From Magallana gigas (Eukaryota), in NCBI RefSeq assembly GCF_963853765.1, contig NC_088855.1, forward strand, positions 15,810,001-15,874,000: a DNA stretch of 64,000 bases, read 5' to 3'. The translations under genes and the position numbers were made by a program. The notes under the pieces were generated by a model. The model ran no database searches. It saw only the letters and a list, made by a program, of their open reading frames with translations, and had not been told where the DNA came from. Below, one piece after another: positions 597-39,331 of this stretch (position 1 is its first letter; every line of letters begins with the position of its first letter).

Positions 597-892
597 AACA
601 GGCAAAGCTTGTTGCTAACTTCCGAAGCAAGCAAATCGACGAACAGTCTACAGCAGGCGTACAAAGTAAACCTTGGGAACAGATGGGGTACCCTCAGCTA
701 AAATTAGACACTGATAGTCCGACGACGTTGAATGACGCCAACATCACGGAGGAAACCCAAATGACATCAAATGTACAAAGACAGCCTTGGAAACAGACGA
801 GATCCCCTCAGTTAAAATTAGACACCGCTAGTCTGATGACGTCAATGGACGCAGATGTCACAGAGAAATCCCCAATGACATCATATGTATAA
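597..892 (+). CDS. Last coding exon (exon 5) of small single-pass membrane protein family, copy 0; upstream exons lie outside the window
   Basis: Acceptor ctacag|AACAGG at 596/597. Open frame EQAKLVANFRSKQ...PWEQMGYPQLKLD...PMTSYV* is paralogous to 24095-24372 and 32966-33387. Confidence 0.8.
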
Positions 893-1592
893 GGAAAAAA
901 CAAAGTTTCACAATCCCATTCCTTCCTGCATAATAATCCTTTCAAAGCAATGGCATATCATTTTTCATGTTCATTTTGCACTGTGTGATATCTATACTAC
1001 TACATTAAAATAATAGACTAGAATTTTTGGGCTTTAATACCGAGAAATCGGAAGAGTACTGTCTTTTGTTTTCTATATTTTAAACATCTGGTACTTGAAG
1101 ATTACCAATTTGTTTTTATTTTTTCTCAATCAAGCGTCGCTAATTAATAGTCAACGAAAATTTCTTTAAAAAATCCGGAAATCATTTGAGTTTTTTGGAT
1201 TTTACAATCTTGCGCATGTGCATTACATTCACGCTAAATCACAGGAGGCTCTTTAGTTTATGCTTCCACAATATTACATTTGCATGTATAAACTCAAAAA
1301 CGATTTTACAAATACGTGAAAACTTTCATTGAAAATTTGTTATATATTATCAAAACCGATTTGGTTTGACTTTTCCTATAGCGTCACGATCATTTCTGTC
1401 AGCTACGTCATGCATAAATTATACACGCCGCCGGTGTGAAAACTATATGATTGGTTAACTCCTATTTTTAGGCCGAGTTATCAGTATACGCTTATGCAAT
1501 GCCAGAGCTGAATGATTTCTCAGAACAGTTTATTTCCCCCCAATTTTATTCATTCAAAATCGACTATCCCGTATGTTTAAATTCTGTGCTAA

Positions 1593-1597
<5 letters not shown>

Positions 1598-1641
<44 letters not shown>
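1598..1641. repeat. (CT)n microsatellite, ~22 units
   Basis: Seen directly. Confidence 0.95.
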
Positions 1642-1644
<3 letters not shown>

Positions 1645-34993: not shown

Positions 34994-35852
34994 TTACATT
35001 TTATATCCAGAGAAAGACGTATACGTCTCAAAAATATTAGCTGTTCCCGAGAAAACTCCAATCCAAGCCTTATCTCCTTGTTTTAGTCTCACTATCGTCA
35101 TTTTGGTGCAATGAAGCCAAGCTTTTGGAGTCCCACCATAACAGTGATTCCATGACTTTTCCTGGTCATTAACAAAGAGTGACGTGTGGGCATATTGATC
35201 CTCATATGCCATAATTGTCCAGTCGAACACGTACCACCCGCCGCTGGGGGCCTTGAAAATTCCGGAAGAAGCGTCATATCCCAGACCTTCGTTCAGATCA
35301 ACTGTCTCAAATATAACCTTTGTTTTGGTGGCGAGATTTCTTTTTTGACTCTTAAGCCGAACGTCAAAAGCAACTATTCTATTACCTAAAATAAACGTAG
35401 TATGTTGAAAGAAAAGTTAATAACAAATTCCTGTTCATGTACCATATTAGAAAATATACTAGATTGTAGTTGTCAGAGTAATAATTCACATTGCTTTCGA
35501 TGTGAATCTTTAAACGACTCTTTTTTATAAATATATTGGTATACCTGTACAAGTGTGAGAAACCGAATGCGGGAGCGATGTACAAAAATATGTGTTTAAT
35601 TTTGAAATTACCAAATTTAAGAAAAAGAATGCAAAATCAAAAGATTTACCGATGAAAGTAGGTAATTTATATAGTGTACATACTTGTCTTTGTCTCATTT
35701 CTACAGTTATTCCTCACAAATCCAACAGCGAGACATGTTTCTGCAACGCTTTTATAATCCTCTCTGAATAATTTCAGGCCTGGTTTTGGAGACAATTTTT
35801 CGCCTAATCCCCAATGCATTGTCAGTAAAAATGCGACAAATGTGATATACAT
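34994..35852 (-). CDS. Secreted globular-head C1q-domain-containing protein, copy 1 (2 exons, 186 aa)
   Basis: Exon 35852-35684 encodes the signal peptide MYITFVAFLLTMHWGLG. Exon 35385-34994 encodes gC1q: VAFDVRL...KVIFETVDLNEGLGYDASSGIFKAPSGGWYVFDW...VRLKQGDKAWI...TSFSGYKM. Phase-1 GT-AG intron, no stops. Confidence 0.9.
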
Positions 35853-37974
35853 TCTGAAACTTAACTGAAGATGATAAGAAATAAATTAGTTCATACAACG
35901 GAAAACATCGCAAAAATCAAATATTTATATCAAAATAAAAAAAAATTGTCTACATACGACACAGTTGCTTAACAAATATATGATTAAAAGTTTTTTTCTA
36001 AAACCCTAAAACTAATATTGACACATTCTTAATATAATGAATTCAGTACTTACGAGCAAGGGTGTTTTTTTATCGAAGAGGTGAGAAATTTGTACAGTAT
36101 GTAAAACTACTTTCATATGTTCATGTATTTATACTATACTCACTTTTTAAAGTTACATTATGAACCAGCTTGGACATTAAATTGCAATTTGATACTATAT
36201 TTGATAAAACAATATCTTGAAAATTTATCGACCAAACAATTTATCAAGTAATGAAACATAAGTCCTTGAAATGAAAAAATGTTTCATTTAGTTGTGGGAT
36301 TGTTCTAAGAAAATTTTCAGGAAATCATTTTGGGGGGTAAATAAATCTTTTTATCTCCCTCATAACATGATACATGCAATAATGTATAATATCAACTAAA
36401 CAAAATATAATATCGGCAGAAGTAAAATAAAAAATTGAATAAGTGTATTTTTCAAAACACTCTTGTGTTAGGGCCTTTGTTATTAAATATACAAAACTTT
36501 AACTACTTTTTTTAACGAAAGCAGACAACGAGTTATTAGACGAAGAAAAAGCATGTAACTGGTTTACTACAATTTCTTTGCTTTATGGGTGCAAAACATC
36601 TTCTACCGGTATTCTAAAGAGAAAAACTGCATTTTATAATTTGTATATAAGTTAAAAAATATGTCAATATTTCTTCATTTTTGATATTTTTTTTTGCAAA
36701 AACAATAAAACACGAATTTAACTTTTGGAATACTTGGTTCACAAACAAGTTATCAGTCAAACCATACTTATATAATCATAATACGATCAATATTATCGGA
36801 GATGTTTCATCTAATAAATAAACAAAATTGCACCTAAAATAAAATGTAATAAATTATGTCAATTTCCTGAATTATAAAAAACACAAAATATATAATTTGT
36901 AATTTGTATATTCATTTTAATTCATATTCGAGTACATGCATGTTCTAAAAACTATAACTGGGGAACGTCTTAGTTACGTTTAGTCTTAGTCCTAAGATGT
37001 TTCTCTAGTCCTACATCACGTTCAAGAAGCTTTTCTTTTAGGACTCAATATCACTTCATCCTAACTGTTTGACAGCATACAAAATGTCTTATATATTTAT
37101 TATTTCATGGATCCTCGCAACAAATGTGATGTCTCTTTACTGTTGCAAGTATAAAACAATCGTTTCTACATTTCGTGGACACCCAACAGTATTGTTTCAA
37201 ATTTTTAAAATATTTTTTAAGAGATGACATTTTAATGATTTTCTTTCGCATCTTCCAAAAGCACCTCCGATTTACAAAAGCACCAAAGGGTTATTTTGTA
37301 ATTACTCTTTGCTTAATTTACAGTACCAATATATATTTTAAAAAATATATATGTGAATATTTACAGTAAAATGCTCTCTTTGGTGCTTTATTCGGAAAAA
37401 TAGCTAGTAATGCAGAAAAAAATTACATAACCCACAAATGATAATTAAGTTTGTGACATTTTCATCACCCACCTTCATCCCCTATGAATGACCAAAATTT
37501 CCTTTTTGTAAAATTGCAATATTTGGACGTTCATGAGAAGGTAAAGTTTAAATTGAATTATGACACTATTTTTTTATATCACCAATACTTATCTTAGAGC
37601 TGCCTTTTTGTAAAAATGTGTGCGATTTCTCACTCAAAAAAAGGCAATGTTTTCATAAACATTGAAGAATAAATCGTACCTAAAATCCACATTAAGGCAA
37701 TCAACTCATCCGGTTTATCTAAATGAATGTATTTTCACTAGATAGTGACACCCTACGTAAAAATATATCCGTCTCGTTCATACCTTCAAACTATCATAGA
37801 ATATTCATTGAATACAACTGATTTAAGGAACCTTTATCAAACAATATTATGCATAGGCGTATTCCATATTAAAAGTATAAACAGCTAGATACTTGAAAGT
37901 AAATATCGTTGAAGGACACGTGTGCATTGTATTCAGTTGATTTATACCAATATGAATCCCACTTATTGTATATT

Positions 37975-38445
37975 CTCTTCAGAAAAGAAGTAACAAGGAG
38001 AGGTCAGAGGATAATAATTTTACTTCCTTTACTGCTGCCATTTTCATGTGCCTGATGTTTTGAGCACTGTTATATCAAGCATACTATACATGTAAATGAT
38101 TACACAAATGATCATTGGCACCAGAATAGACCTACTCTACATGATTCCATTTATACAATGTATACACACGTGTACAACTAAGACAATAAAAAATTCAAAA
38201 CATAAAAATGAAATTCATAACACCTCTGATACTAGTGCATGTATTTGTTTGATTTATAAAAACAATTCTTAGTTACCATGAGGGTTTAATAAATTATACA
38301 AACTAACTACGTCTAAGGAACTTATTCCTTTTTCGATTGACATTTGTAGTTCACAAGATTATTCATGTAAAGTAAATTGTAAGAGATAAGTTCAAGGTAT
38401 TTTTATGAATGTTGTAAATTATTCAAACTCATGGTTCAACACACA
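37975..38445. repeat. Dispersed duplicate of the region downstream of the NuMA-like gene (54863-55420)
   Basis: Shared colinear blocks, e.g. aattttacttcctttactgctgccattttcatgtgcctga, ctactctacatga, gacaataaaaaa..ttcaaaa..ataaaaatgaaattca, aagagataagttca. Confidence 0.85.
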
Positions 38446-39030
38446 ATTAGCATATCAAATGATTGAATTGGAATATTTGAATATATAAATGAATGTATAT
38501 CCCTAACAATCATTTTCAAACAGATTTAGCTACTAAGTATATTTGTTATGCTAACAGTGCAAGCAATCTCATTTAAGAGACACATTTAGCTATATGAATT
38601 TATGAATATTTAAAACCTTAATATCAAACCGATCAAGTTAAGATATCATAGTTTCGAGATAATTTTTTGTAACAACGAGATTTTTTCTCGTAATAACCAA
38701 ATTAACTTTTTTATCATTACATTTAGATAACTATCTTGTAATTATGATATATTACCTCATAATAACGAATTTTGTTTTAGCAATATTCATCTGTTGAGCA
38801 TGCAGGAGTTATATTCCAGTAACAATTTTCAAGTAAATGTACAACATCAGGTATTTCTTTAAACAAAAAAATTATGTTTTTTATTTCGAATCATTTAAAA
38901 TGTTTTTCGGTTAAATATGGTATTTTAGAAACTTTGTATTTGTGTTTATCAAAACCAAAAGAATATAAATACATTGAACTAAAGATGCATAATCCGCCCA
39001 TCTTACGTTTGTTATGAAATCAATCTAAAG

Positions 39031-39331
39031 AACAGGCTAAGAATATCTTATACCTCCGAGCATATGGCTAGAAAACAGCAAACAGTCCACTGTAGATGTA
39101 CAAAGTGAACCTTTGGAACAGATGGGATCTACTCAGCTAATATCGTACATCCATCGTCAGACGACATCATATGACGACAATATCACAGAGGAAACCCCAA
39201 TGACATCAGATGTACAAAATGAGCCTTGGGAACACATGGAATCCCCTCAGCTAAAATTTGATACTAATAGGCTGATGATGTCATAAGACACCAATGGCAC
39301 GGAGAAAAACCAGCTGACACCATATGTATAA
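39031..39331 (+). pseudogene. Orphan disabled copy of membrane-protein exon 5 (copy C)
   Basis: Closest to copy B exon 5. CAG>TAG at ~39069, a 1-nt deletion just after it, TAT>TAA at ~39284. No exons 1-4 recognisable upstream. Confidence 0.8.

Follow-up and report, generated by a model that had tools for sequence, protein, structure and literature searches.

Transmembrane adaptor proteins (TRAPs) combine a very short ectodomain, a single transmembrane (TM) segment, juxtamembrane cysteines of the palmitoylation type and a long, non-enzymatic tail, and their ectodomain stubs are unlikely to bind ligands (PMC3342071). Here, we describe a tandem gene family of the oyster Magallana gigas whose predicted proteins have a comparable layout. 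The stretch analysed (hereafter the window) comprises 64,000 nucleotides (nt) of chromosome OY970747.1 (RefSeq contig NC_088855.1, positions 15,810,001 to 15,874,000 of the forward strand), has no runs of N and has a G+C content of about 33%. Its positions 11748-26372 were compared with 14.6 kb of the 61-Mb record OY970747.1 (assembly GCA_963853765.1) and are identical to them. It contains two whole genes of the family, which we call A and B, the terminal exon of another (gene 0) and one dead exon (copy C). A five-exon plan is common to all of the family genes, which are transcribed and spliced as predicted. The gene models themselves are already present in RefSeq and UniProt; what is new is modest, namely the definition of the family, its tandem layout, its apparent restriction to Magallana and the anatomy of its motifs.

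A first-pass annotation, made by a model from the letters of the window, had assembled two five-exon genes encoding 209 and 246 residues. Both genes are confirmed, and the motifs that it quoted are located where it had placed them. Joined at canonical GT–AG sites, the segments 13748-13799, 14890-14923, 16023-16210, 23690-23767 and 24095-24372 encode the 209 residues of gene A, and 27957-28008, 29746-29773, 30464-30615, 31434-31520 and 32966-33387 the 246 residues of gene B. Intron phases 1, 2, 1, 1 are common to the two genes, and exon 2 is a micro-exon in both (34 nt in gene A and 28 nt in gene B). The exons are listed below with their untranslated regions (UTRs) and coding sequence (CDS) limits.

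13641-13799, plus strand: gene A (LOC105349120) exon 1, with 5′ UTR, ATG at 13748 and predicted signal peptide ending in AAYFQ; intron phase 1
14890-14923, plus strand: gene A exon 2 (micro-exon of 34 nt), coding for (G) and 11 further residues; present in transcript contigs
16023-16210, plus strand: gene A exon 3, oligo-Gly, predicted TM helix, basic juxtamembrane stretch and CCCCC
23690-23767, plus strand: gene A exon 4, which encodes the conserved helix EQLDxHMLxLILLA
24095-25470, plus strand: gene A exon 5, coding as far as 24372 for two repeats of 38 aa and a terminal MTSYV; 3′ UTR to at least 25470
27856-28008, plus strand: gene B (LOC117693024) exon 1, with 5′ UTR, ATG at 27957 and predicted signal peptide
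29746-29773, plus strand: gene B exon 2 (micro-exon of 28 nt), coding for (G)IEARRIKVR
30464-30615, plus strand: gene B exon 3, Gly-rich stub, predicted TM helix, CC and acidic run
31434-31520, plus strand: gene B exon 4, which encodes the EQLDLHMLKLILLA helix
32966-33487, plus strand: gene B exon 5, coding as far as 33387 for three repeats of 38 aa and a terminal ITSCV; 3′ UTR to at least 33487
30069-30146, plus strand: alternative first exon (coding part) in RefSeq isoform X2 (P0010), within gene B intron 2; a computed model

The translation of gene A matches XP_011457104.2 (P0026; LOC105349120; UniProt A0A8W8JX32 and K1R9Z2) over 100% of its residues, and that of gene B matches XP_034338828.1 (P0008; isoform X1 of LOC117693024) to the same extent. 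The RefSeq and UniProt entries for both genes carry the label ‘uncharacterized protein’ only, with no family, domain or function. The earlier description of the family as unassigned is thus right in that no named family applies, but exact models were already in these databases. The predicted junctions are reproduced in RNA by 12 assembled contigs. Eleven Logan RNA contigs, from ten runs, encode gene A uninterrupted and show its predicted exon junctions, and a spliced gene B mRNA is represented by one 920-nt Logan contig (SRR14803159) that maps to the five predicted exons. In these contigs the UTRs of gene A reach at least to 13641 and 25470, and those of gene B at least to 27856 and 33487; the gene A contigs L004-L008 start at 13641-13719 and are spliced at 13799. 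Isoform X2 of gene B exchanges the signal peptide and the basic stub for a 26-aa basic N-terminus with no signal peptide, and its first exon was not seen among the transcript contigs examined. If real, X2 would be a signal-anchor protein, possibly with inverted topology.

A side observation concerns the micro-exon, the start of which (GTATAGAG(G/A)CCC) is kept together with the acceptor region in four paralogues (including those on contigs L002 and L013). About 160 nt of the intron upstream of it align at 72% between genes A and B (14728-14934 against 29580-29784), which is better than the alignment of coding exon 3. This conservation may serve as a signal in micro-exon splicing, or may be a mere remnant of the duplication.

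The two further copies of exon 5 that had been noticed in the window both exist, one intact and the other broken.

597-892, plus strand: terminal exon 5 of gene 0 (LOC105349119), with two 38-aa repeats and MTSYV-stop; intact open reading frame (ORF) and AG acceptor
39031-39331, plus strand: copy C, a relic exon 5, with TAG at 39069-39071, a frame shift and TAA at 39284-39286

The intact copy is 92% identical to exon 5 of LOC128187545 from C. angulata (P0070, 198 aa), a gene that sits directly upstream of the gene A orthologue in that species, and positions 1-488 of the window align to its intron 4. Because of this exon-5 identity and intron-4 alignment, 597-892 is assigned to a third gene, LOC105349119, as its terminal exon; exons 1–4 of this gene lie upstream of the window. 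Relic exons 1–4 for copy C, and other family exons elsewhere in the window, were searched for and none was found. Copy C is part of a segmental duplication (32944-36223, repeated at 39007-43959) that comprises a family exon 5 together with a minus-strand C1q gene, and the public contigs that contain it are collinear with the genome and unspliced. The dead copy was produced by the duplication of this block of exon 5 and C1q gene.

Outside the window, at least four paralogues lie in tandem in C. angulata. LOC128190450 and LOC128190449 are the orthologues of genes A and B, and LOC128189381 (P0095, 245 aa) is a fourth tandem member further upstream than LOC128187545. The M. gigas counterpart of LOC128189381 is A0A8W8K163, annotated ‘Transmembrane protein’, and M. 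gigas has an additional family gene, LOC105328847 (P0069, 248 aa). Finally, a 213-aa Logan protein (P0072) shows 88% nucleotide identity to gene A (dS, the rate of synonymous substitution, is 0.16), and its 3′ UTR is collinear with that of gene A. Judging from this similarity, P0072 is the gene A orthologue of another taxon or of a deep haplotype.

A profile of the family gave 16 matches at E ≤ 1e-3 when run against 1.84 billion protein representatives. Those that bear a species name are all from M. gigas or C. angulata, and the remainder come from Logan assemblies and are close, oyster-like sequences. A second profile search, in a set of 5.8 billion proteins, gave the same result, with matches confined to oysters. 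The searched sets include the NCBI nr proteins and are assumed to cover other sequenced bivalves. The lineage restriction supposed earlier is therefore upheld by these searches, and the family would appear either to be confined to Magallana or to have diverged elsewhere beyond detection. Its tandem arrangement is likewise upheld, and it belongs to no named family. Pfam searches with single exons and with seven full-length family proteins gave nothing over threshold, the sub-threshold matches to FAM163, EphA2_TM and Ribosomal_L19e being rejected as composition effects. The profile search of the PDB gave nothing that we consider significant: apart from a designed helical repeat (E = 0.002), all that it returned were phospholemman matches, which were not significant.

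Each protein is predicted to be a small type I single-pass membrane protein, and the layout first proposed, with a signal peptide, a stub of about 20 aa, one TM segment and a Cys cluster, is found in the six full-length members. All six have an N-terminal hydrophobic segment of signal-peptide length with an h-region of about 11–13 residues, those of P0070 and P0072 falling under our 19-residue hydropathy cut-off. The stub consists of an invariant I-E, a variable stretch and then an oligo-Gly run. The variable stretch is basic in A, B, P0072 and a further member, gene -1, and reads QGERGKSSR in gene 0 and LEVVMVPR in LOC105328847; the Arg-rich stub had been put forward as a trait of the family, which these two sequences contradict. 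Besides the signal peptide there is a single strongly hydrophobic segment, the TM segment, the core of which is free of D, E, K, R and H, and a CC, CCC or CCCCC cluster follows within 25 residues past it in 6/6 full-length members. A conserved helix, EQLDxHMLxLILLAEQAKLVxYLRAQQ, then runs across the exon 4/5 junction. AlphaFold2 places this helix at residues 90–121 in B and 103–137 in A, with a predicted local distance difference test (pLDDT) score of 52–65, compared with 76–79 for the TM helix of gene B and about 30–40 for the tail, which is therefore predicted to be disordered (the mean pLDDT of the A and B models is 44–48).

The tail comprises 138–191 aa, with a pI of 4.4–5.2, about 17% Ser+Thr and no Pfam domain. 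It is built from two to four copies of a 38-aa unit, of which 29 were counted in 11 sequences. The core of the repeat is conserved (P-W-E-Q...Q-L-K-L-D-T...T-P-M-T-S), and its consensus ends in SpmTlnDaniteeTPmTS. N-x-S/T sequons are unconserved: a tail has from zero to three of them, with none in P0095 and a single one in P0069. In the clade formed by 0, A, B and C the protein ends in T-S-[YC]-V, the T, S and V being invariant in eight sequences: TSYV in A, the window copy of gene 0 and P0072, and TSCV in B. This end is a candidate class I PDZ ligand (pattern x-[S/T]-x-hydrophobic).

We then compared rates of change along the proteins. Between paralogues A and B (dS of about 0.6), the ratio of nonsynonymous to synonymous rates (dN/dS, or ω) is 0.56 overall; by exon, it is lowest in exons 1–2 (0.38) and highest in exon 3 (0.70), with exons 4 and 5 at 0.48 and 0.49, respectively. 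Identity in exon 3 is 49%, compared with 52–63% for the other exons. When gene A is set against its orthologue P0072, the short Gly+TM segment shows a dN of 0.28 and an ω of about 1.3, compared with a dN of 0.06–0.13 and an ω of 0.44–0.86 for the remaining parts. The first-pass annotation had the TM and ectodomain as strongly diverged. That the TM segment and stub are the fastest-changing part is supported in the orthologue pair, and weakly so between paralogues. The dN/dS values of 0.38–0.76 agree with the fast evolution that had been suggested, and for the tail and helix the ratio stays below 1, i.e. they are constrained. For the pair M. gigas and C. angulata, selection on gene A exon 3 was considered and rejected: the exon is 92.0% identical and the flanking upstream intron 92.9%. 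Because the flanking intron is equally diverged, the divergence of exon 3 is that of a haplotype block.

We may ask at this stage what such proteins do. The reading that we favour, tentatively and with slightly less than an even chance of being right, is that of a palmitoylated, membrane-tethered scaffold, similar to a transmembrane adaptor that does without tyrosine signalling. The signal peptide and the downstream TM segment would give a type I orientation with a cytoplasmic tail. The Cys cluster would be S-palmitoylated and would keep the protein in ordered membrane domains, with the TM segment acting as a generic anchor. On the cytoplasmic side, the conserved helix may serve in self-association or partner binding, the repeats would present short linear motifs in multivalent form, which phosphorylation of S/T-P and acidic S/T sites would probably regulate, and the C-terminal S-x-V could dock a PDZ protein. 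A cytoplasmic tail fits the Cys cluster and the basic residues on the C-terminal side of the TM segment, the unconserved sequons and the conserved C-terminal S-x-V. Moreover, the constrained parts (the CC cluster, the helix, the core of the repeat and the C-terminus) are all on the predicted cytoplasmic side. The TM segment itself looks like a generic anchor and not a specific pairing surface since it is uncharged and the fastest changing, and this rapid change argues against specific TM–TM pairing with a receptor.

Several observations weigh against such a scaffold. No conserved adaptor motif (YxN, PxxP, or the immunoreceptor tyrosine-based activation and inhibition motifs ITAM and ITIM) was found in the family. 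Nor is there a charged TM residue; the adaptor or co-receptor role first proposed, which had been drawn from the architecture, is hypothetical. Both A and B have a strongly basic ectodomain, and the positive-inside rule favours a cytoplasmic location for a segment of this kind; in addition, RefSeq isoform X2 has no signal peptide. The PDZ-type end is variable, with TLYE, TSYE and IRHT as the C-termini outside the 0/A/B/C clade and TLYV in gene 0 of C. angulata. The dN/dS values of 0.56–0.76 correspond to weak constraint overall. Finally, the searchable literature, queried by LOC, XP and UniProt identifiers, contains no mention of the family, and queries by SRA runs for tissue or condition returned nothing relevant. 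A bolder form of the scaffold reading, which we regard as quite unlikely, would make the family a mollusc-invented class of palmitoylated scaffolds for membrane-proximal signalling through the helix, the acidic Trp repeats and the PDZ-type end, with no tyrosine motifs, and possibly acting downstream of the expanded pattern recognition of oysters; the change in the stub and TM segment would then be driven by host–pathogen conflict.

Other readings of the same proteins have to be weighed. They could be young orphan genes under weak constraint, with little or no function, maintained by duplication and turnover. The restriction to a single genus, the dN/dS of 0.56–0.76, the variable number of repeats, the dead exon copy and transposable-element insertions that are unlike between sister species would all be expected in this case, and the exon-3 block of gene A, which diverged with its flanking intron, is again a matter of haplotype and not selection. 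However, ORFs and splice sites are intact in at least five paralogues from two or three taxa, and the I-E, the Gly run, the CC cluster, the helix, the Trp of the repeat and the C-terminus are conserved despite a paralogue dS of about 0.6. Spliced mRNAs also occur in many independent RNA-seq runs. We hold this reading to be unlikely.

That the proteins are regulatory subunits of a pump or channel, like FXYD/phospholemman or KCNE, the TM segment packing on a transporter that the tail tunes, is in our opinion quite doubtful. Their plan of signal peptide, ectodomain of about 20 aa, one TM segment and basic, Cys-containing juxtamembrane stretch is that of FXYD proteins, and phospholemman/FXYD chains are the sole natural single-pass matches in the PDB, at a non-significant E of 0.67–2. 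Yet the TM segment is the fastest-evolving part (dN of 0.28 and ω of about 1.3), which is the opposite of what a specific TM–TM interface would require, no stub contains an FXYD motif, no protein has a Pfam match to FXYD, and a repeat tail of 140–190 aa far exceeds the tails of FXYD or KCNE proteins.

An inverted topology can also be envisaged, in which the acidic, S/T-rich repeats would be extracellular and would act as a mucin-like protein or interact with shell or matrix, for example through an isoform that lacks the signal peptide and uses the TM segment as a signal anchor. The composition of the tail would suit this (pI of 4.4–5.2, about 17% S+T, built from repeats, with N-x-T sequons in several of them), as would the TM segment of gene B, which is flanked by a basic N-terminal side and an acidic C-terminal side, and the basic N-terminus of isoform X2, which has no signal peptide. 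On the other hand, sequons that are absent from P0095 and single in P0069 make an N-glycosylated extracellular tail unlikely; in A, gene -1 and P0072 the Cys cluster lies on the C-terminal side, as does a strongly basic stretch; and no paralogue lacks the hydrophobic N-terminus of signal-peptide length, while S-x-V is conserved. X2 is moreover a computed model that was not recovered from the transcript contigs. We consider this topology improbable. The last reading, very improbable in our judgement, is a precursor from which a furin-type protease would release a short cationic, Gly-rich, antimicrobial-like peptide at the N-terminus: a basic, Gly-rich stretch follows the signal peptide, R-x-x-R occurs in A (RRAR) and gene -1 (RKVR), and immune-type C1q genes adjoin, but the released peptide would measure only about 8–18 aa with the TM segment directly after it, the best-conserved parts of the protein come after the TM segment, and a furin-site stub was rejected as a family trait, the basic residues being missing in gene 0 and LOC105328847.

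The C1q-domain genes next to the family, to which the first-pass annotation had drawn attention, are real.

34997-35416, minus strand: C1q-domain exon of a neighbouring gene (Pfam PF00386, E = 3.2e-17)
41496-41915, minus strand: C1q-domain exon of a second neighbouring gene (Pfam PF00386, E = 7.9e-20)

The two exons are 71% identical to each other in amino acids and 82% in nucleotides. PF00386 was absent from the family itself, both in single exons and in full-length proteins searched with Pfam, and its members are not C1q relatives. The C. gigas genome contains several hundred C1q-domain genes. The neighbourhood says little alone, and one exon-5 copy belongs to the duplicated block.

Two transposable elements occupy the space between and around the exons.

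16320-21194, minus strand: DIRS-like tyrosine-recombinase retrotransposon, antisense in gene A intron 3, with RVT_1 and Phage_integrase ORFs
4969-11048, minus strand: Helitron-type transposon, with three abutting ORFs in a Helentron layout

The DIRS-like element has gag-like, reverse transcriptase and tyrosine-recombinase ORFs and is seemingly intact, with 40-nt inverted termini (16565-16604 and 21155-21194) and an 81-nt perfect hairpin at 16318-16566. The element does not belong to gene A itself and is absent from the orthologous site in C. angulata. Properly spliced gene A mRNAs exist, and the individuals from which they came may be without this insertion. In the Helitron-type element, the ORFs encode, in order, an OTU-like domain (Herpes_teg_N) with Helitron_like_N/Rep, a PIF1 helicase and an APE-type endonuclease. 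They overlap by 14–20 nt, and two frame shifts thus seem to have split a single polyprotein. The part of the window that bears the element (985-12129, 11 kb) matches only about 1.8 kb in C. angulata and looks like an insertion difference between the species. In the other direction, the C. angulata gene B orthologue has about 3.4 kb extra in intron 1 (29404-29476 of the window against 19802-23215 of contig L002).

The remainder of the window is rich in repeats. A satellite array at 47665-49335 consists of ten 166-bp units of about 90% identity. In size it resembles the Cg170/HindIII oyster satellite, which is linked to Helentron-derived elements. The interval 51300-53243 is very AT-rich; arrays of a 22-bp near-palindromic unit, ATTTTTTGATATCAAAAAATCG, occupy 52197-52548 and 52974-53243 in both orientations, preceded by AT microsatellites of 10–25 bp. 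Further on, a 177-bp tandem repeat is present in 3.5 copies of 83% identity at 53889-54509, with diverged copies back to about 53317. A gene for a large coiled-coil protein lies on the minus strand at 56560-63644; its 1207-aa ORF (60021-63644) has weak coiled-coil matches in Pfam, and same-strand ORFs at 56560-57892 are probably more of its exons. Scans of the window for tRNA and Rfam families gave no matches.

Many lineage-restricted, tandemly expanded bivalve genes remain unexamined, and this family is now defined by its exon plan, motifs, repeat, locus and at least five members. The present outcome is a tidy annotation of an ordinary lineage-restricted family, with no surprise.

It remains to place the family among known systems. 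It resembles the DAP12, DAP10 and FcR-gamma chains, which act as partners of true receptors and to which the co-receptor idea of the first-pass annotation comes down, in its tiny ectodomain and one TM segment, but differs from DAP12 and FcR-gamma in having no charged TM residue, ITAM, YxxM or ectodomain Cys, and has no homology to them. FAM163 (PF15069) is alike in its small single-pass form with Cys after the TM segment. Gene B matches this family at E = 0.013 and 16.3 bits, under the 28.3-bit gathering score, over the TM segment, CC and acidic run; the match is confined to gene B and its isoform, is not found in five other members tested and is most likely a composition effect. The likeness to FXYD (phospholemman) is wider, as it extends to the predicted type I orientation, the signal peptide, the ectodomain of about 20 residues, the one TM segment and the basic and Cys-containing juxtamembrane region, whereas the oyster proteins have no FXYD motif, an unconserved TM segment and a tail that is many times longer.

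Vertebrate TRAPs such as LAT, PAG/Cbp, NTAL/LAB and LIME work via conserved tyrosine docking motifs, whereas the oyster family has no YxN, ITAM or ITIM. The alignment of the family shows no invariant tyrosine, and YxxL occurs once each in two members only. The TRAP cysteines follow a CxxC pattern, whereas those of the oyster family range from CC to CCCCC and precede a tail of 38-aa acidic repeats. A cleavable signal peptide is predicted for the oyster family, unlike LAT and PAG, which to our knowledge have none. There is no sequence homology with TRAPs, the profile searches having given no match beyond oysters and no Pfam family. Nevertheless, the oyster proteins share with TRAPs the stub of about 20 aa, the one TM segment, the juxtamembrane Cys and the long tail that is predicted to be disordered. 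If an adaptor role in oyster immunity or membrane organization proved true, an adaptor-like design would have arisen independently outside vertebrates.

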